From NCBI GenBank assembly GCA_038496445.1, contig JALMLS010000383.1, positions 1 through 35,015 of the forward strand: 35,015 bases of DNA. The letters run 5' to 3'. A program made the position numbers and the translations under genes. Numbering within the stretch: the first letter of the stretch is position 1; every line of letters starts with the position of its first letter. The stretch comes from Trichosphaerium sp. ATCC 40318 (Eukaryota; Protista; Tubulinea). Below, in pieces: positions 4,984-33,812 of the stretch. The notes under the pieces were generated by a model. The model ran no database searches. It worked only from the letters and a program-made list of their open reading frames with translations, and had not been told where the DNA came from.

Positions 4984-5577
4984 ATGACAGCAACACAAAA
5001 GGCACTTGTTCACAATCTACATGCCTTTACAATAGCTAATGAACCGTTAAAACAGACAAATACCTCAGAATTAGATGAATGCTATCTAGTGCATCTTCCA
5101 GTAGAGCTACAGCTTGATATAATTGACTTGGACACTGAATTGGAAATAAAGTGGCCTTTGCTCTCAAAAAAGTCAGCAATCATAACAAGATATGATAACG
5201 AATTGAATAAACATGGGAAATGGACAAAATATTTGGTAGAACCATCTAGAAGGATAAACCCGAAGATTTTAGGTGTTGAAGATTGGAATCATGGTGCAGA
5301 GAATGGAGAGTTCAAAAGTTGGCACAAGAATGGTCGTCCAAAGCTTTGTTGTAGTTATGTTCTTGGTAATCTTGAACGAGAGTACAGAACTTGGTACTAC
5401 ACTGGACAAATCAGCACTCAATGTAATTATGTAAGTAGTAATCTTGATGGAGAGTACAAGAAGTGGTATAAAAACGGTGTACTATGGAAACACTACAATT
5501 ATGTTAATGGAAAACGAAAGGGTGAGTGCAGAGAATGGCGTGAGCAGGGACAGATACATATGACTTGGATAGAATAA
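4984..5577 (+). CDS. F-box-like + MORN-variant (MORN_2/YwqK-like) repeat protein, intronless
   Basis: LVHLPVELQLDIIDLD followed by GE(F/Y)KxW(H/Y)xNG repeats. Confidence 0.8.
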   Translation: MTATQKALVHNLHAFTIANEPLKQTNTSELDECYLVHLPVELQLDIIDLDTELEIKWPLLSKKSAIITRYDNELNKHGKWTKYLVEPSRRINPKILGVEDWNHGAENGEFKSWHKNGRPKLCCSYVLGNLEREYRTWYYTGQISTQCNYVSSNLDGEYKKWYKNGVLWKHYNYVNGKRKGECREWREQGQIHMTWIE

Positions 5578-9591: not shown

Positions 9592-9770
9592 CCATCTTAA
9601 CTTCAATCGCCACTTTCAACATGTAGCTATGTTGCTATACATATCCTACCTAGGTAGGCAAACTCTTTTGCAATTCGTTTGTGCTGTACCGAGGAAAAGT
9701 TCTGACAGTCAAAGCAATTTTTTTTTCGTTTCGAAAATCATTTTTTGGGATTTCTGAAAACGCCTCAAAA
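9592..9770 (+). repeat. Dispersed ~180-bp repeat, copy 1
   Basis: Aligns by eye with 33646-33812 (shared blocks CCATCTTA, CTTCAATCGC, GCTATACATATCCT, AGGCAAAC, TGCTGTACCGAGG, CTGACAGTCAAAG, TTCTGAAAA). Confidence 0.85.
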
Positions 9771-12571: not shown

Positions 12572-14279
12572 ATGAATTTGCTTAGTTTACCATGCGATCT
12601 ACTAGTACGTCTGGCGAAGATCTTTACGACTTCCATTCACTTTCAACGCGACTAACACACTTTTAAAGGTCGAAATAAGCAATTACAACAATCACACCTT
12701 TAAATCCTTACATTCGCTGTCAAAACTAGCAGCTGTGAAGACCCATTTTAAAGCGTACGTACTAGACTGGTTTTTAACGCTTTTGCGTTAGTTCTCATCG
12801 CAAAAAACCAAATGCGCCGCTAACTTTTTCGTTTTTTACAGAAATCTCAGTAAAAACGGTCTTTGGATACAATGGCACGATAATGGTAATTTGAAAGAGA
12901 AGTGCTACTACCAAGAGGGAATCAAGGAAGGAATGTTTTTAGCTTGGTACAAAGACGGGCAAATAAGTCACCAATGGCAAAACAAGAACGATCACGTTGC
13001 TGGAAAAGCTACAACGTGGTATTCAAATGGACAAATCCATTTAACTGGATTCGTTATTGAAGGAAAGCCTAAAGGAGAAACAAAGGTGTGGCACGAGAAT
13101 GGACAGTTACATAAAGCGTATTGTTTTAATGATAATGGAAAGATGGAAGGAGAGTTTCAAGAATGGAATAAAGACGGTGTTGATATTCGTCAGTGTTTCT
13201 ATAAAAATGGAGAAAAACAGGGTTTGTATATGGAGTGGCACAATGATGGTTCATTAAAGGAGCACAGCTATTACAAGGATAATGAGTATCATGGGGATTG
13301 TACAAAATGGAGTAGAACTAATCAAGTGATATTTAAAGGTAGTTACAAGGATGGTGAGAAAACAGGTGAACACAAGTTTTTACGTCCTGACTCTGGGGTG
13401 TTGTACAAAACACGTGTTTTTACTAAAACGCAAAGTGGTCTTAACATAGTAGAAAAGAGGAAATTTGATGAGGGTGGGCGGTTGGAGTGTTCTGCTTTCT
13501 ACAAAGAAGTCAGTGAGAGTAAAATTAAAGAAAAACAAGCAGATCGCAGATCACGCCGCCTGAATTTGGTTAGCAGCTCTATCTCAGCAGTTGGGCATGG
13601 TGAATACAAATGCTGGTACCCTAGTAATGGTCAACTGAAAGTTGAGTGTTTTTATAAAGACGGGAAGATTCAAGGTGAGAAAAAAAAGTGGCATGAGAAC
13701 GGACAACTGAAATCAGTTGTTGGATTTAAAGATGGATTAGAAGAAGGAGAATTTAAAGAATTTTATGATAATGGCCAGTTAAAGGAGAAGCACTTCTTTA
13801 AGGAAGGTATGAAGGAGGGAGAATGTACTGAGTGGGGTTACCATGGAGAATTTACAAAGTGTTGTTTTTATAAGAATGATAAGCTTGATGGAGAGTATCA
13901 GACTTGGAATGATGATGGTAAGTACTGTGTTCATTGCTTTTACAAAAATGGAGTAAAAGTTGGTAAATATGACGAATGGAATTACAAAGGAGTAATGCAA
14001 TTAGATTGCTTTTATGATGATAATGGAAAGTTAGAAGGAGAGTATAAAAAATGGAACTTTAGCGGAGTATTAGTGAAGTCTTGTTCTTATAAGAATAATA
14101 AGTTACATGGATTTTATATGATTAGAACAGTAGATGATGATTATGAAGAGGAGGTGACTTATACAAGTTATGAGAATGGAGTAGAGGTAGAATATAAGAA
14201 GCTTTATGAAGATAAACTGGCGCTTCAAAAAGAAGTTCAAGAACTTAAGGAACAACTGAAAGAAAGCCAAAACAAATAA
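12572..14279 (+). CDS. F-box-like + long MORN-variant repeat protein with 2 N-terminal introns
   Basis: Exons MNLLSLPCDLL|VEISNY..LSKLAAVKTHFKA|NLSKNGLW splice in frame to ORF 12891-14279, which has many GxxxxWxxNG repeats and a C-terminal coiled coil. Confidence 0.85.
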
Positions 14280-14490: not shown

Positions 14491-15524
14491 CAGTGGTAAA
14501 ATGAAAACGGGATTTTGGATATAAATCCCACTAAATTCCTTTGTTTTAGGGATTTTTAAGGTAATTTGTGAAGAATTCTTATTTTTATTTTTTTTTTATG
14601 GCAGGATTTTTGATAGAATTACCATAATATTCCCTTAAATACAGAATTTTCAGAATTATTGTACAAAATCCACCAAATAATGTACTAATTTAGTTAGGGT
14701 TAGGGTTAGGGCTAGGGTTGAGGTTTATGAAAGGTACAAATTAAGTTAGGGTTAGGGTTTAGTTTTATATTTGCAAAAAACCATCGACACCTTAGGTACA
14801 TAGGTTTTTCTAGCAAACAATATCCACATGCTATTATTAAAGGTGAAAAAGCCAATGGTACAGGTTAAAGTGCATTAATCCAAAAAGTAACAGAGAACGC
14901 GTTTTAGGTGGTTTGGAAAATCACTTAAACATAAATATCTCTTACTTATTTGTTTTAGGATGATTAAAGCATTGCAACAGCCTTATTACACCATTAAAGA
15001 ATGTATTTAAAGCATTAACTCCAAGTACGTTGTTTTTAAAGCTTATTTCCACTTAATTTATCAAAAAACCCTACGCGTTCTTAATTTAGCGTTTACAAAT
15101 GCATTAATTATTGTTCAGGCTCTCAAAACCAAATGCAATCAAATTACTTCTTTCGTTTATGAAGACATGATGTATTTAACTTGTACGTGTTATTTAGGAT
15201 GTTTGTATTTTGTAATGATCAATAAATAAAATGACTTTGCATTAATTCTGAACCAAAGTATCGAATAATATTTTGTGTAATTTATAAAGTATTTTTTATT
15301 GAAATCTACAAAAAATACATTAAGAAATGCTATAAAGAATACATAGAGAATTCTATATAAAATACATACGCAATTCCAAAAGTAATACTCTAAGAATTCT
15401 ATGAGTAATACTTATGGAATTTCATATAAATTCAATGGGAATTAAGGAAGAGTTTTTCCGTCTACTTTTCCCATAGGAAAACAAGGTGGATTACTTAAAA
15501 ATTCCCATTTTTATTTTACTACTG
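14491..15524. mobile_element. Non-autonomous AT-rich TIR element with internal TTAGGG repeats
   Basis: Left end CAGTGGTAAAATGAAAACGGGA matches the reverse complement of the right end CAGTAGTAAAATAAAAATGGGA at 19/22. No ORF. AA flanks both ends. Confidence 0.65.
14694..14757 (+). repeat. Interstitial telomere-like repeats
   Basis: (TTAGGG)3 CTAGGG at 14694-14717 and (TTAGGG)2 at 14746-14757. Confidence 0.8.
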
Positions 15525-17178
15525 AAAGGAGTTGTTTTGACACTTTACAAATTTTGCACGTTCAAGCACTGTAAAGCCTAATTCCTTCATAACTTCACCT
15601 GTTATTTCATGTATGTCATTAACGCACATACAGTTCAACAGTAACCCAAGGTTTTGTGTGCGTTGTTCGTCAAAACCGGACATCGTCAATATCTTAGTCC
15701 ACTCTAATTTTTTGTAGCTTTTGGCAGATGTAATATCTATTGGTTTACCACCGATAGTACCATTTGTATAATCTATTTTTAGTTCAGCAGGAATATCTAC
15801 AGGCACATGAAGTAAGGTTTTATGTTTGATTCCGTCTATGAGAAACATGGCAACAGTGACCTCAAGAATATTCAATCTGCCACTCCCGTCTTGATCAGCA
15901 ATGGTCCATATACGCGATAACTGTGAAGTTCTAAAACGAAATTCAGGAACAAGTTGGGTTTTTTTGGCATGTGTGCTGTACCCTAGTTTGGAAAGCAAAA
16001 ATAAATCTTTGCCTTGTTGGGTATCAATGTATCCAACATCGGAAGTGTCATGTTTACGAAACAGACCTTTGTATGCTTGTATATCTGAATCGGGTATACA
16101 CCATAATTTTTTATCACTATTTTGAACTTCTGTTCTAAGTAAAGTTTGACTTTGCAAAAAATACTGAGAAATATCTTTTTTGTGTTCGTACTTAGTGCCA
16201 CTAGTTATCATACCAGCTCCATTACCTTCTGCAGTTTCCACTGTACTGGTACCAATAGTGCCATGTATATAATCAATTTTTAGTTCCTGAGGAACATCTG
16301 CAGGTATATGAGTTACAGTTTTATTTTTGATTCCATTTAGGAGAAACATGGCAACAGTGAATTCGAGAACATTCAATCTGCCTCTCCTGTTTTGATCAGC
16401 AATACTCCAAATAACTGCCAATTGTGCATTTCTTTAATAATAGGTAATAAGCACAAAAAAACGTTTTATATCACATGTTGCATACCCCATTTTGTAAGGA
16501 ACAAATAATTCTTTGCATTGTTGTCCATCAATGTATCCAACGTTAGACGTATCTAGTTTATGAAACAGAGCTTTGTATGTTTTCATCTCTGAATCTGGTA
16601 TACACCACATGTCCTTTGAATCTTCAAGGTGTTCTTGCTCTCTGAATTGGAAGAAAAGTTGGTATTTGTTCAACTGGTTTTTTTTGTGTCTCGTACTTGT
16701 TACTACTGATAGCCACACCAGCGCCAGTTGTCCCACCGATGGTACCATTTTCATAGTCGATTTTGAGTTCAGGAGGTACATCTGTAGGCACATGAGGTAA
16801 GGTTTTACATTTGATTCCATCTATTGTGCATTACATGCAGATCAAAAGATTGTACTGCAAAATGTATATAATGACGTGACATACAACAACACAACAATAA
16901 AATGTCACAACAACACAACAACAAAGTGACACAACAACACAACAAGCTGACGGCAAAATGTACAAAGTATACTTGTAACAAAAATTAACACACAGCCATT
17001 AGAAATATGTACACATTGTGTCTAAACATGTGCAGTAAAAGCTCACAATGGTTTGAAAATCAGAAAGTGTGAAAATATTACTCCTGTGTCGTCACAGACA
17101 TTAAAAAAACTGCACAGTAGGCAAGACTTATTCGCAAATCCAGAAAATAACAAAATCTAATATTTATTTGTAGACAGC

Positions 17179-18781
17179 TTACATAGTATTTCTAACTGAA
17201 AAATCACACACAGCTTGGTTACGATGACATACATAATAATAAATACAATCTTTTCTATTAAATATTTTACTAGCAGGCTGTTGGCAGTAGCAGAGTACAC
17301 CTGATTTCTTCTTCTGAAAAACTCGTTATTGAAAAAAAAAAATTATCAAATTACGCACAATGCACTTGAGTAAATGCCCCACTAATGCTGCGTCCACAAT
17401 TGTCTCATGTTCATTAGTGTACAAGTGAGTGTGAACAAGAGGTTCTGGTAACCCATACAATTGATGTGTGTTTGCGTAGTATTGTAGTGCTAGCTCATCA
17501 TCAAGTTGTTCAAGCTCTTCTTCCTTTTTTTTCTTTCTTGATTGTTGCTCCATGCGCATTTGTGCAGCGTGAGCGTGCTAAACTAGTTAGTGAAGGCTTG
17601 TAACAATTACACTACCTTTTTTTGGCGTTTTATGCGGTTTTGGAATTGTTTAACATCCTAATTGCATTTAACAAGCAAAAAAAAACACGTGATTGTTTGG
17701 TCTACAAAATTAAGCACGAAAATTGTGATAACGTTTACCTCCTCACACTTGCTAGTAAATTTGCGTTTGGAACGCTATATAATCATTAAAATTACTGTAC
17801 ATTTGGTAAAACTTACTGTTCGGACAGTGATGACATTATTGATGTCGTCTATGTCCTACTCGTATTAGTACTAACTATTAAACCAAAAAAAACCACATGG
17901 TACGTTTTTTCTTCCCAAAATGTAGCCTTTTCCGCTGAACTAATCAAATTAGCATTATCTTTGTGTGCGGTGTACCTTTGAGGATAGGAGTGCAGCCTAA
18001 AATTACATGTGAGTGAAAACTACCAAAACTCATAAACTCAAACGTACGTCTTTTTTTTCTGGCTTGTCTGGTGTGTGGATTGATTTTTCTTGTTCAAGGT
18101 TTGAAAACAAGTTTGGAGAGTAAACTAATCAGCGTTACACCCATCTTGAAAATTACATACTTGCTTGTTTGACCTCACGTTCAGGTGTAGACAAAAGGTA
18201 ATTGTATTTTGCTAACTCCTCTAAAGTGAAATTAAAACGCAGGTAGGTTACACAAAGACATACTAGGTGGACTGTTTTTCCACTGTTTTTGTGATGCCAA
18301 GTTTTTTAATTCTTCCAGCGCACTATTATATTGCTCCATTTGCTTCAAACGTGCTTGAATGTTGCTAGAACCCAGGGACGCTCTGATTTTTGCTTCATCC
18401 ACCTGACGTTTACTTTTAATGCTATTTTGTAGCTTCGTAGCCTATAACATTGAGATGCAAACAAAAAACTCTCTTGTACCAGCTGCTTCAACTGAATGTT
18501 GGTCCTCAGGTCTTTACCATGGCCGTCTGTGTGAGGAATGTTATTTCAAATGTAGCACAAATAAACGTACAGTGGCTTTGTTTACACCACGTTTTGCTTA
18601 GGCAAATTACATCTTCATTATTTACTTAAGGACACCTGTGTTGTCTACCATTCCGTTTGAACCTCATATCACTCTTAACAAGATGACAAATGGTACATAT
18701 ATGGCCTCTATTATTGCGCAATGGTATAGGATCAACTGGATAACCTGCTGGTCTAGGTGGATCAGGAGGTACGTGTGTCAT
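17179..18781 (-). CDS. Transposon second gene: Cys/His finger, coiled coil, SHP-box-like motif and GRF-like zinc finger (about 12 exons)
   Basis: Phase-consistent GT..AG chain: MTHVPPDPP..HICTICH..HRCP*..CLSKTWCKQSH|YGH..|..|FSGKGYILGRKN|..|LCYCQQPASKIFNRKDCIYYYVCHRNQAVCDFSV. One in-frame TAA at 18626-18628, which a weak 39-nt intron could remove. Confidence 0.65.
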
Positions 18782-18827
18782 TGTTTAATAAACTAAATGT
18801 ATTTATTTTTCCATCACAAAATCACAT

Positions 18828-19991
18828 ATGGCAACAGAAAAAGCTACTTATATGTTAGGTTTGGCTGCCGCAGTAGGTGGTCAAAGCTTTGCTAGAAAGC
18901 TTTTTGGAGCATCTGCTGGAAAGACAAAATACTGGCTCACAAAATTTGTAGATCCCACCTTTCATAGCAACAAAAATGGGGGGCTTCGCACAACAAAGTT
19001 TACTCCAGGTAGATTTTTTTTTTGAGTTTAGTTAATTGTTGTTTAGAGCAAGAAAAAAATGTGTGGGATGTTGTACTTTTTTTACACAGTGTGGACCCCC
19101 AACTGACGTTGATTGAGTATGCCACGGTAATCAACGAATTAATTGTGCCATATAAAATCTCTAAAGCATGGATATCACGGAGATTTATTGCTATGGGGTG
19201 GACTTGGAAAGTATGAACATATAAATTTTTTGATATTTTTTTATTTATTTTTTTGCAGGTTGTGGAGCACAAGCAAATTCAAAAATACACTCCAGAAAAT
19301 ATGTTACACTATAACAGGTTTCTTTCTTTTGTATTGTCAGTGTCTCCATCACAGTTAAAGTTTGCAGACGAGACACACTTTGTTTCTAAAAGTTTGTATT
19401 TTTTTTTTTAATTTTTTTTTTTCACTTTTTTTTTAGGCAACTATCGAAAATATGGCCGAGGCCCTTGTGGCCATAAAGTAGTAGTTATTAATGAACCTAT
19501 TCTAAGTAAGTCCGCTAACCTAACTATATTGACGTCACTTACTGCAGATGTACGTTTTTATCCCAACAATCGTTTTTTCTCAAATTTCTATTAAAAAAAT
19601 TATATAGGTTCCAGTGCTTGGTATGTATCATAAACACAAGAACACACAGCATGATTGGGCGTCTTTTGTTTACTATGCACTAAAAAATGATTATTTGGTG
19701 GCTGGAGATATTTTGGTATGTGATAATGCCCCTATTCACTGTGCCGACAAAGTACTAGTACTAGTAACAGAGGCTTGTGAATCAAAAAATGTGAAATTAT
19801 TATTACTACCAACTTATTCACTGGAGCTAAACCCTTGTGAACTTGTATTCGGAACAGTAAAAAATCACATCCGTTATTACAGAGGAAAAGAGCCTTTAGA
19901 TGTAGAAGTAATGATGGCATTGTCAAGAATTTCAAAAACAAAACTTAAAAACTTTTATAAAAAATGTCGTGGTGGTGTAGAGCTTGAATAA
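18828..19991 (+). CDS. IS630/Tc1-like DDE transposase, 5 exons, D-D38-E
   Basis: Spliced ORF is open: HTH-like region, KFADETHF, ILVCDNAPIH and LPTYSLELNPCELVFGTVK. 38 residues lie between the second D and the E. Confidence 0.9.
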
Positions 19992-21688
19992 ATTTTGGCC
20001 TGTACTTATTAAAGTAACTTCATTAAACAGCAAACTTGTTCTTTTTATTGAGTACTATTAATAGATCTTGCCATACTGTGCACTTGTCTACTGTACATTT
20101 TGCCGTCAGCTTGTTGTGTTGTTGTGTCACTTTGTTGTTGTGTTGTTGTGACATTTTATTGTTGTGTTGTTGTATGTCACGTCATTATATACATTTTGCA
20201 GTACAATCTTTTGATTTGCATGTAACGCACAATATGAGAAACATGGCAACAGTGAATTCAAGAATATTCAATCTGCCACTCTCATCTTGATCAACAATGC
20301 CCCATATCATTGCCAAGTCCATTTTACTATAATGTAACGGAAGAAATTAATACACATGACACTGGTAGAGTTGACATTGTTATCATACTGCAAGTTGTAT
20401 TGCATAAACAGCTGTTTACATCGTTTTCCTGAAATGTAACCATTGTTGTCACTATCTTCTTTATAGAATAGTGTTTGAAACTCTTGCTGCTTTGAATCCG
20501 GAATTCTCCACATGTGCTCTATTTTTGCAAATGAGAATTAAAATGATAATATACATTGTATAATATTAGTGTTTGATTTCCAAGAAACTTCTGGTGTGTA
20601 GTTGTAATCAACAGAAATGTCTTTTACCTGAACGCTTGTTTGAAAGTATACGCAGGTCAAATACCTTTGAATGGATTGAATTATTACTGTAAGAGCAGAT
20701 TACAGTATAACTGGCAGAAATAAAGCTCTTTGAAGCGATTTCTTTTTGAATACCTCAAACAGGCGTTTTGTTCAATATTATTACCCGCACACTTGTGCTG
20801 GTGAAATGTGCCACGAAGTTGTGATACTCAAATTGTAACTGAAGTAAAGTGAAGAAATTAGTGGTACCAAATAAATGTCAATAGTTTTCTCCATCAAAAA
20901 AAAAAAAAAAAGACTCGTAAAGCAATAATGCGAACATAACCGATAGCAGTCACATCAGTGATTTATTTTACACAGCCTACCACCAGTATTTTTAAAGCAA
21001 TTATTAACTTACAGTCCCACGAGCAGGGAAGAGATTTTCTACTGAATCTGAATAACTCTGTGTTATTTGAACGGCTTGAGTTAAAAACATTAAGTACTGA
21101 AACCAAGACAGTGGCATGGTTTCGTTAGAAAGATAATAAGAATCGTTCAACGGCTTACAAGTGGTCACTAGTGGTATACAATGTCCATGCAAAGAGGCTC
21201 ACAACTAACACGTTAGTACTCAGTTATCATAACATAACCAGAAGGTAATTTACATAAGGTTACACGCAATAGTATGTAATTATTAGCAGAAAATAAGTGT
21301 GGTTCCTTTTCGCTAAATTTTTTTACAGCAACATGTTGTGAGACAGCTATGCATGATCTCAAACACCTTTTTCACTCAGTTTTCGAACAGTTTTGTTACC
21401 TTTCTGAACCGTCATTATATGGTAGATTCTGGGAGAAGTACATAAAGGCCGCATAGTTGAGTACATTTGAAAAACAACCAAAAGATCCTCAGTGAGGACA
21501 CTGTAATGCTCTTTGTTTGTTCAAATGTGTTTTCTAGGCAACACCTATGGTAACGAGTAAGGTCTATATTCGCCGATGCACGCACCTTGTAGATGCTCGT
21601 AGATTTGTTCTTTTTTTTGATTTTTTACATACAATGAAAAAAGGTGATTGACGGTGCCAATGTAAGTTTTATTATTTGTTTTGATTGT

Positions 21689-25075: not shown

Positions 25076-25094
25076 AACTCAATCTGTTTATTTA

Positions 25095-27051
25095 GTCAAA
25101 CATGAAAAGTGTCCCAAAACATGTAAAGTGTCCCAAAAAAAAATGCCATGTTTTTTTTGTAATTTATTTTTTATTTTTACACTATTTAATCTAGCAGTTT
25201 AAAACTTTCGTCACACGTCATTAACACCACTGCGCATATTCTACAACGTGCGACTTCTATATGAGCAACCATTCTCATGAGTTATAAATCGCACTTTAGC
25301 TGCGTCCAATTTGATGCAATTTGGGCACACCATGTGAGTACCACAATTGATGCACCACTTCCACCCTGCGCCACCTCTCCACACCTTTAACATACATTCA
25401 CGACAGGTGTAAATTTGATGGAAGTACTTTTTTTTAGCACTTTCTTCTTTTTTGCGAATTTGATTTTTTAGTTTGGTTTCTGCTCTCTGCTTCTTACGAC
25501 TTTCTTGCTCCTTCTTTTTTGCAACAGAGGCTGCCTTGCGCTTTTGTCTGTTAACTACTGCAGCTTCTTTTTCAAGCCTTTTTTTTCATCATACTCATCT
25601 TGATAATAGACCAACCCTTCTGTGCCGAATACATCCTCCTTTCCCATATGGAAGGAAATTGTTCTTTTCTTTCTAGGAGGCATCTTTGATTCAATTACAT
25701 GTTGCATTACTAGTTCAGCTTCTTCAACTTCAGGGTCACTTGGCGCAGTGGAGTTTGAACTTTTTTTACCAACATTTTTTTTGCCCGGTCCAAAATTTTT
25801 TTACGATCATACGGCCATATACCAACACTCTCCCAAGCGCTTTTAATGATATGAGGTAATAAGGCTTGTCTTTCTGCTTCGTGAACAATACTCAAATTAA
25901 AATATTGTTGGCTCCTAGTCACTATGGCATGCTTACTCTCTTGTGCATGCAGTTTTGTGAAAGTCTTGGCTAAGGTCGCAAATGGTTTATCATCGAGAGG
26001 TTGTTGAAAATGGGATGTATGTGCTGGCCATACCATGGTCATCACATTCTTTTCCATACATTGTAAGAGGTGTTCTTTTTTAATGTGAGGTGACAAGCGA
26101 TCCAAAAATAAAATTGCTGTTCGATCTCCCTGAAAACTCGAAATTTCTTTAAGGAACACTGTCAAAATCTTTGGCCAAATTTCATTTGTTACATAACCAT
26201 TGCGGTGATAGCAGTAGTAACGTGGCCATGATGAACGAGTGTTACGTTCTTTGTGGATCATGAAATTTGCCTTTTGAGTTGGCTTTCCATTTTTTCTAGC
26301 CGCCATAATGTACACTGTGAGGAGGACCCTCCCAGTAGCTGATACAAACGGGACCAGTGTCACATTTAAGCCTGACCTTAGTGCTATTGTACCATGATTA
26401 GTGCGTCTCCGTGCTCCCATCACATGGTGAGTAAACTTGTTATTTTTGAAAACAAAAAGTTTTTCATCAGCGTTGATCATAATTTCAGGAATGGTTGGGA
26501 TTCTCTCTTGAATTTCTTCATAGGCGTCACAGAACTTTCTAGTGAGGACTAAAGTCTTTGGTGTAACGCGTTGGTAGCTTATTGGTTTTGGAGTCGTCTC
26601 AGTAAGGAAATCTGACCAACGTTTCTTGAACCCATCAAACCAACCTCGCATATCAGATTGGGGTCTTTTTTTAAACAAAACACGTGCGGTACTCCGTAGT
26701 TCTTCAAGTGATAAAGGCATATGCATCGCATCAAACGCCATACAGTACCCCACGAGTTTTTTTTCTTGTGTTTTCGTAAATATTAAATTTCCGTGCCCCA
26801 AATTCTCCCGTCTAAGTGCTCGGTGAACTCTCTTTTGTAGTGAATTAGGGATTACGCCGTAGATAGCAGCCACTTCCGTGCAAATTTCGTTTAATGAGCC
26901 CTGTGGTTCCTCGCTTTTGTTGTGGTAAATTTTTATAACGTCATTGGCAGCAAGAGTGATCTGCGAACTCTTTTCATTAGGTGCGGGCTTCATTTGTTGT
27001 TCAACATTTTTGGGACACTTTACATGTTTTGGGACACTTTTCATGTTTGAC
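25095..27051 (-). mobile_element. pogo/Fot1-type DNA transposon
   Basis: Perfect 45-bp TIRs GTCAAACATGAAAAGTGTCCCAAAACATGTAAAGTGTCCCAAAAA, with TA at 25093-25094 and 27052-27053. Confidence 0.95.
25241..26993 (-). CDS. pogo/Fot1 DD35D transposase with C-terminal Cys-rich finger (two -1 frameshifts in A-runs)
   Basis: CENP-B-type HTH (GWFDGFKKRW), NADE, FLDRLSPH and QPLDD (35-residue spacing). Adding one A near 25764 and one near 25582 extends it to CRECMLKVWRGGAGWKWCINCGTHMVCPNC. Confidence 0.85.
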
Positions 27052-27409
27052 TAATTATTCAAAAGTGTAATTACAAAATACATTCCTAGCAATTATTTGT
27101 TGTGGGATGTATCACAATAGGTCTTACAATTTCTTCTCTGAACGAATGTTACAATAGCACTTCCGCTTTAAACTGAAAAGGCAGATCACTTGATTACATT
27201 GTATTAGCAATGTTAGGGTAAAGCTGAACCGTTGCTTGTAGATTCAAATAGCCCTATACAGGGTGTGGGTTCTATTTACGTAAAGATGTGTAGCGTAGCG
27301 ACATCAACAGGGCAGTAACATTTAAGCAATGAAATAATTTTGAATCTACGTTGACTTATATGCAAAATATTACCTAACCTTCACGTAACAAGCTAATTAA
27401 TGACTATAG

Positions 27410-27895
27410 ATGATTTACAACCTATCATACTTGCCGTTAGAGCTACAGCTCGATATGATTGATTTGGACCATGAAGTGTATTGTAAGTTCCCTTTACTAT
27501 CAAAACGGACAGCAACAACTACAAGGTTTGATTCTAACTTAAAGAAACACGGAAAATGGCGTTGCATGGCAAATATCATAGGAAAAACACAAATAGTGCG
27601 GCAATATCATTGGAAACATAATAAATGTCATGGGGAGTACAAAGAATGGTACGCAACTGGTCAAATACGTGAGATTGGTAACTACAACAATGGAGAAAAG
27701 GAAGGAGAGTTTAAGAGATGGCATGAAAATGGTCAACTGGCTGAAAAGGTTAATTATGTGAAAGATGTCAAGCAGGGAGAATACAAGAGCTGGTATGAAA
27801 ATGGACAATTATGGGTTCACTGTGCAAAGTTAGTTGATGGTAAATATCAAAATGGTTTTAAGTGCTGGCGAGAGAACGGTGACCTATATGAATAA
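27410..27895 (+). CDS. F-box-like + MORN-variant repeat protein, intronless
   Basis: LSYLPLELQLDMIDLD, LLSKRTA..RFD..KKHGKW and GEYKEWYATGQ / GEFKRWHENGQ repeats. Clear paralogue of 4984-5577. Confidence 0.85.
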   Translation: MIYNLSYLPLELQLDMIDLDHEVYCKFPLLSKRTATTTRFDSNLKKHGKWRCMANIIGKTQIVRQYHWKHNKCHGEYKEWYATGQIREIGNYNNGEKEGEFKRWHENGQLAEKVNYVKDVKQGEYKSWYENGQLWVHCAKLVDGKYQNGFKCWRENGDLYE

Positions 27896-33238: not shown

Positions 33239-33384
33239 GGCAAAAAAGCCGAAAATTGTGCGAGTTTCCTGTCATTTAGAGCGCGTTTTACAAAGAAAAC
33301 TCGTAAAGTTGTCAGCTGTAGCGTTTGTTGTCATTTTTTGACGTGTTTACAAAGAAAACTCGCACTGTTTTCGGCTTTTTTGCC
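33239..33384. repeat. Inverted repeat with 32-bp arms, overlapping a pair of direct repeats
   Basis: GGCAAAAAAGCCGAAAATTGTGCGAGTTTCCT versus reverse complement GGCAAAAAAGCCGAAAACAGTGCGAGTTTTCT. TTTACAAAGAAAACTCG occurs twice inside. Confidence 0.7.
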
Positions 33385-33645: not shown

Positions 33646-33812
33646 CCATCTTACACTTCAATCGCTACTTTTAGAATGTAGCTATACATATCCTTCCTAG
33701 GCAGGCAAACCTTTTTGCGATTCGTTTTTGCTGTACCGAGGGAAAGTACTGACAGTCAAAGTTTTGTTCGAAAACTCATTTTTTCGGTGATTCTGAAAAT
33801 GTCTTCTCAAAA
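33646..33812 (+). repeat. Dispersed ~180-bp repeat, copy 2
   Basis: Similar to 9592-9770. Confidence 0.85.

Follow-up and report, generated by a model that had tools for sequence, protein, structure and literature searches.

Multi-gene transposons of the IS630/Tc1/mariner (ITm) superfamily are known from ciliates. The TBE elements of Oxytricha, Tec of Euplotes and Sardine, Anchois and Tennessee of Paramecium carry an ITm transposase within terminal inverted repeats (TIRs) together with extra open reading frames (ORFs) that are under purifying selection, among them a zinc-finger/kinase ORF in TBE, and the transposase diverges more slowly than these accessory ORFs (PMC7325037, PMC4724952, PMC5405496). 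Outside ciliates ITm elements are treated as one-gene systems, and those of amoebozoans have barely been sampled, with two elements in a survey (PMC7325037). We have analyzed a stretch of 35,015 nucleotides from Trichosphaerium sp. ATCC 40318 (contig JALMLS010000383.1; the whole stretch is called the window below) that contains an ITm element of 3,409 bp, at 16824-20232, in which a second gene lies head to head with the transposase. Comparison with relatives from metagenomes makes it almost certain that the two genes define a stable two-gene transposon family. The kind is already known from the multi-ORF elements of ciliates; this clade and its partner gene are apparently undescribed.

Stable second genes are found in other elements as well. 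In the two-gene PIF/Harbinger elements, which have a 3-bp target, the second gene has a Myb/SANT domain, and in the L31-duo ITm elements of bivalves, with a DD37E transposase, ORF2 is of the SGNH/PHD type. Both can be likened to the element described here in stably keeping a second gene whose product has a domain for binding DNA or chromatin; neither Myb/SANT nor SGNH/PHD was found in the partner. Fanzor1 is carried as a second gene by some Tc1/mariner elements. The partner here differs, with no RuvC/TnpB match in the five of its exon pieces that were long enough to scan, nor in the partners of relatives; an earlier reading of this DNA (the sequence-only reading) was thus right that it is not a Fanzor.

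The element and the gene that it interrupts have the following parts.

15519-16821, minus strand: tandem EH/EF-hand repeats of the host gene into which the element has inserted, 3' part; the 5' part resumes from 20235
16822-16823, no strand: left TA target-site duplication, from the empty-site match to paralogous host repeats
16824-16964, plus strand: left TIR, 141 bp
18781-17179, minus strand: partner gene, 12 exons and 366 codons, sequence-based model
18781-18571, 18526-18480, 18441-18264, 18220-18161, 18124-18048 and 17996-17976, minus strand: partner exons 1-6
17939-17904, 17855-17817, 17774-17739, 17657-17616, 17577-17359 and 17313-17179, minus strand: partner exons 7-12
18782-18827, no strand: AT-rich spacer of 46 bp between the two ATGs, from the gene models
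18828-19008, 19047-19210, 19259-19391, 19437-19549 and 19608-19991, plus strand: transposase, 5 exons, model from the sequence
20092-20232, minus strand: right TIR, 141 bp
20233-20234, no strand: right TA target-site duplication

The two TIRs differ at 2 positions over their 141 bp, and the left one contains 2.6 copies of a 24-bp repeat (16883-16945), which are candidate protein-binding direct repeats. When the flanks are fused over one TA, the result is the sequence of two uninterrupted paralogous host repeats, near 15839 and 16340. These empty sites in the repeats of the EH gene indicate that the duplication is exactly TA and that the insertion breaks a coding exon. The host gene, a tandem array of EH-domain repeats spaced at about 500 bp, is knocked out by the element. 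The start codons of transposase and partner have 46 bp between them, a spacer that probably acts as a shared bidirectional promoter, and the stop-to-TIR gaps are 214 bp on the partner side and 100 bp on the transposase side. Splice models for both genes were made from the sequence alone and each exon was searched separately against the databases, the joined partner model (with X at its stop) being used for frame checks and local comparison with fetched loci. The TIRs and the TA duplication proposed by the sequence-only reading were confirmed, the latter by the empty sites, and so, as predictions, were the 5-exon transposase, the minus-strand gene of about 12 exons, the 46-bp distance and the tight packing. 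The structure of the partner gene stood, with the correction that codon 52 is a nonsense codon, which had gone unreported.

The predicted transposase (18828-19991) has 324 amino acids and four GT..YAG introns of 38-58 nt. Its catalytic triad lies in the motifs FADETH, CDNAPIH and ELNPCE with DD38E spacing, and the Pfam DDE_3 match (E=4.5e-11), with the TA duplication and the TIRs, places the element in the ITm superfamily. No clear helix-turn-helix match came out of the exon-by-exon scan of this transposase; in relatives HTH_33 was found, in part faintly. Where four aligned relatives have YSPE, the transposase reads YSLELNP, a P-to-L replacement in YSPELNP. The codon concerned (CTG, 19822-19824) and a TIR mismatch at 16830 (GCG vs GCA) both fit CpG deamination, and the CpG observed/expected ratio is 0.59 in the element and 0.78 in the window.

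Only one NCBIfam family was matched, NF033545 (IS630), with E down to 3e-28 in relatives; exon 5 scored 40.5 bits and near full-length relatives 76-99.3, the cut-off being 100. Bacterial IS630 elements (NF033545, DDE_3) share the TA target and the catalytic motifs, but the clade described here is separate from them and has introns, it scores 40-99 bits against the 100 required, and the bacterial loci are without a partner. With DD38E/Intruder the element shares the spacing of 38 residues from the second D to the E (PMC7731502). Intruder, however, is by its description an animal family of 1.5-1.7 kb with a single gene, derived from DD34E/Tc1 (PMC7731502), while the element here is a protist one of 3.4 kb (2.0-5.0 kb in the clade) with two genes; the match of the clade to Sleeping Beauty (SB100X) was weak (E=1e-3), and the equal spacing is probably convergent. 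The ciliate elements differ in being of DD34E or DD32E type and in having as many as four ORFs, in some elements including a tyrosine recombinase, against one head-to-head partner, DD38E, the standard code and a non-ciliate host here. The C-x2-C-H motif of the partner was not seen in two Paramecium ORF2 sequences inspected by eye. The element is a cut-and-paste member of the ITm superfamily, from a eukaryotic IS630-like DD38E clade, and is not a bacterial IS630 (by the cut-off), an Intruder, a TBE, Tec or Paramecium element, or a Fanzor carrier.

The evidence for a stable pair comes from 80 metagenome loci retrieved with the last transposase exon. The better relatives can be aligned with the transposase over its full length, with identities of about 30-40%, and the 38-residue spacing is present in 52 of the 53 scored loci. 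Complete TIR-bounded elements of 2.0-5.0 kb were found at L003, L014, L031, L041, L043, L087, L088, L090 and L093, and the ends of several relatives resemble those in the window, with TA followed by TTGTGC, TTGCG, GTGCC or TTGCA. A search for viral relatives found none, and bacterial genomes yielded only distant IS630. The C-x2-C-H motif, taken from exon 1 of the window partner, was scored over 1.3 kb upstream of each transposase. In the discovery loci it was found on the opposite strand in 17/27 cases and on the same strand in 2/27, with about 0.9 expected from shuffles. The held-out loci, fetched afterwards via a different search, gave 7/8 vs 0/8, and the bacterial IS630 control loci 3/42 and 1/42. 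Altogether a head-to-head gene with the zinc motif is present in 24 of the 35 scored related loci. It lies within the TIRs wherever both element ends are visible and is spread over the branches of the DD38E clade. A quick tree of the catalytic C-terminal half placed all partner-bearing elements in one clade of 54 rows (SH-aLRT 97), apart from bacterial IS630. Between elements the partner exons had proportions of non-synonymous differences (pN) of 0.24-0.44, far below the synonymous ones (pS, 0.61-0.94, mostly saturated), and the single dN/dS that could be estimated was 0.23; on these sequence comparisons the partner genes are under purifying selection. They do diverge faster than the transposase, as seen in L088 and L091 (56-63% identity for the partner vs 85% for the transposase).

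Within the partner of the window the following features were delimited.

18516-18700, minus strand: zinc domain of the family, C-x2-C-H-x2-K...H-x-C...C-x5-C-x6-H, from exon 1 into exon 2, by profile
18628-18626, minus strand: in-frame TAA at codon 52, within the zinc domain (exon 1), read from the sequence
17904-17939, minus strand: SHP-box-like motif FSGKGYILG on its own 36-nt exon, candidate p97/Cdc48 docking site, by pattern match alone
17359-17657, minus strand: Lys/Glu/Gln-rich, probably helical stretch with an imperfect VIM-like run, exons 10-11
17179-17313, minus strand: C-x-C...C-x6-C cluster in the last exon, by eye resembling a GRF finger, from the sequence

Across the family the zinc domain has the extended consensus C-x2-C-H-x2-K...H-x-C...C-x5-C-P...H, and its ligand pattern suggests that it binds zinc. 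A profile built without the window scored the window protein at 26.8 bits, with the register kept past the stop, and exon 1 was the only strong match of this profile among 13,109 segments (E=4.8e-5, its own seed loci and duplicates set aside). As the seeds were picked with a pattern derived from the window, the held-out test described above is the cleaner evidence. Neither Pfam nor PDB had a meaningful sequence match for the domain. Exon 1 searched against 1.84 billion proteins gave two repetitive false matches and nothing else, and a search with the zinc profile retrieved only its own seeds; matches of cytochrome c to C-x2-C-H were rejected as motif coincidence. An AlphaFold model of the domain from 19 sequences reached a pLDDT of 81 and gave, in fold searches, no PDB chain at Z>=2, no Foldseek match and Atlas TM <0.4; fold searches with another model found nothing either, and feature searches of the Atlas yielded nothing of use. 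For so small a predicted domain a missing fold match is no proof of a new fold.

Several points qualify this evidence. The tree was a quick search on 134 columns, and the piece of the zinc domain after the stop is by itself not significant (28 of 300 shuffles scored as high). Ten clade-member loci with upstream sequence are without the C-x2-C-H motif, several of them being short contigs. It is absent from L087:4542-6581, a complete 2.0-kb clade member with TIRs, so that loss or divergence of the partner does occur. Short minus-strand ORFs persist upstream in L087, perhaps a degenerate partner. The sequence-only reading had proposed a stable partner gene rather than random capture, and had asked whether it travels with the transposase and how it evolves. 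On the first point 24 of the 35 scored loci agree with it, and on the second pN lies far below pS. Its suggestion of a possibly undescribed two-component family holds for the clade, as we have found no paper on it or on its partner in the literature covered, which leaves out most subscription journals and Repbase; it does not hold for the two-component kind, multi-gene ITm elements being known in ciliates (PMC4724952, PMC5405496).

TAA is a true stop in this genome. Removal of the one at codon 52 by splicing was rejected, as every candidate GT..AG intron (25-100 nt) ends in AAG and deletes conserved zinc ligands, while all 15 modelled introns of the element end in YAG. Reading it as Gln was rejected as well, with 0 internal TAA/TAG vs 74 CAA/CAG in six long ORFs. 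The truncated partner and the P-to-L replacement in a conserved transposase motif indicate that this copy, young by its TIR identity, is yet probably no longer self-sufficient and probably decaying. The eleven modelled introns of the partner are GT..YAG, T-rich and of 36-81 nt, with a GC content of 31% against 39.5% in the exons. The 81-nt one (17658-17738) includes a stretch of 13-15 nt bordered by an AG and a GT, a possible extra micro-exon. Private intronic palindromes were looked for in the element and rejected.

Beyond the zinc domain the partners carry different add-ons. The charged stretch that follows it is predicted to be helical in both models, and a strict VIM pattern had no match in the window partner. 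The SHP-like motif had a P of about 0.002 in shuffles, with a loose pattern. For the GRF-like look of the last exon there was no Pfam, profile or PDB support. In L088, L090, L091, L095 and L096 a chromodomain stands ahead of the zinc domain, with weak Pfam matches in four of the five. In this subclade the zinc domain is also preceded by an additional C-x2-C pair. The chromodomain profile matches those of cpSRP43, CDYL and CBX at 1e-7 to 1e-5, with CDYL and CBX4 at about 1e-6. RanBP2/NZF-type fingers are found in the partners of L020 and L031, and a UIM-like motif in that of L008. Another subclade (L027, L043 and L044) has an N-terminal region of about 100 residues and then a shortened zinc motif, which in L043 and L044 is only C-x2-C-H plus one Cys. 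The probable last partner exon of L020 (L020:3-581, minus strand) contains KQVARKFTGGK, identical to residues 4-14 of histone H3 at 9 of 11 positions; elsewhere in the 654,000 positions compared, no match exceeded 6. It is possibly a mimic of the H3K9 tail or the start of a Tudor-like domain, seen post hoc in one locus whose element end is not visible; the Tudor reading had no Pfam support.

What could such a partner do? Both genes would be transcribed from the short shared spacer, and the transposase would bind the TIR repeats, excise the element and insert it at TA. The partner might then be an element-specific chromatin adaptor that counters silencing. Its anchor would be the zinc domain, attached either to the transposase or to the DNA of the element itself. 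The add-ons, namely the chromodomain, the ubiquitin readers of NZF or UIM-like type and a hook for p97 of SHP type, would engage the chromatin and ubiquitin machinery of the host, keeping the promoter and the ends of the element open, as VANC does for VANDAL. The copy in the window, with its partner cut at codon 52, would need the helper of a sister copy in trans. This chromatin-adaptor, anti-silencing role is the one that we favor, although we give it somewhat less than an even chance. The reasons are the constant anchor, the variable host-facing readers and the divergence faster than that of the transposase, as would be expected for a protein facing the host. VANC is a precedent for a family-specific anti-silencing protein encoded by a transposon, and the Mutator-like VANDAL serves as a model in being a DNA transposon with an accessory protein that acts on host chromatin (PMC6719617). 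It belongs to another superfamily and is likened to the element here in this respect only. The broader formulation, a modular counter-silencing or transposition adaptor in a widespread protist ITm clade, with a new element-anchoring zinc fold and swappable modules including in one element a possible H3K9-tail mimic, is put forward only tentatively.

Some observations speak against an adaptor of this type. The element has no short repeat array like the target of VANC outside its TIRs. Add-ons vary between elements and most partners are without a recognisable module, the SHP-like motif being confined to this element among those scanned. The chromodomain does not have two of the three aromatic cage residues, and its best PDB match is the non-histone chromodomain of cpSRP43.

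Rather unlikely, yet the best of the other explanations, is that the partner is a direct transposition cofactor that binds the transposase or the TIRs and acts in transpososome assembly, in chromatin targeting or in the stripping of the transposase from product DNA by p97/Cdc48. ClpX strips MuA from product DNA in this way. Chromoviral integrases carry targeting chromodomains, of which the cage-less ones found here are reminiscent. The tight co-expression layout would suit a cofactor, as would the SHP-like motif, with the loose pattern already mentioned. An SHP together with ubiquitin-binding fingers is the layout of the Wss1/Spartan proteins, which with their SHP bring Cdc48 to chromatin (PMC4559962). 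However, if the partner were an essential cofactor, conservation equal to that of the transposase and one uniform set of modules would be expected, and neither is seen; other ITm transposases work alone, DD38E/IT transposing in HeLa cells (PMC7731502), and we found no paper tying p97 to transpososome disassembly in the literature covered.

Less probable still is that the element limits itself through the partner, which as a repressor or degradation adaptor would damp the expression or activity of the transposase and control copy number. The layout, with a divergent gene and a shared promoter of 46 bp, is typical of autoregulators, and the ubiquitin/p97 modules could mark the transposase for removal, but a repressor acting in trans should be easily lost from selfish copies and this gene has been kept across the whole clade. 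That the second gene is chance-captured host DNA in decay (Pack-type cargo) is very improbable, for in spite of the in-frame stop, the intron-rich host-like structure and the exons mostly without a homologue found, 24 distant elements whose synonymous sites are saturated have the same zinc domain in the same place and orientation, and the profile built without the window recognises the partner here.

A clade with a fast-evolving modular helper would offer a small system in which to learn what the accessory proteins of transposons are for, a question that TBE and the Paramecium ORF2 raise as well. It also supplies a zinc domain without structural match and, in the copy studied here, a probable natural helper-null allele. 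If the proposals hold, the adaptor would be an ITm counterpart of VANC outside plants, or this a first eukaryotic transposon to recruit p97 to its own transpososome.

Besides the element, the window contains arrestin, EH, MORN and GST genes in intron-rich surroundings with the standard genetic code. Another TA-flanked element is located at 25089-27057, with 51-bp TIRs and a pogo-type transposase of 444 amino acids (DDE_1, HTH_Tnp_Tc5). The stop of this transposase is at 25710, and beyond it the minus strand codes at 25585-25286 for a run rich in Lys and for a cluster of Cys like that of a PHD finger, probably a last exon or a frameshifted tail. A dispersed repeat of about 115 bp is found at 9600-9714 and 33655-33761 with about 90% identity, and a short inverted repeat lies nearby at 33239-33384; they are possibly miniature inverted-repeat transposable elements or elements like short interspersed ones. 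A short run of telomere-like TTAGGG repeats is located at 14679-14759, in an AT-rich intergenic stretch. Three genes with MORN_2 repeats (4984-5577, 12891-14279 and 27410-27895) are intron-less in a genome that is otherwise intron-rich; giant viruses and bacteria commonly have genes of this type.

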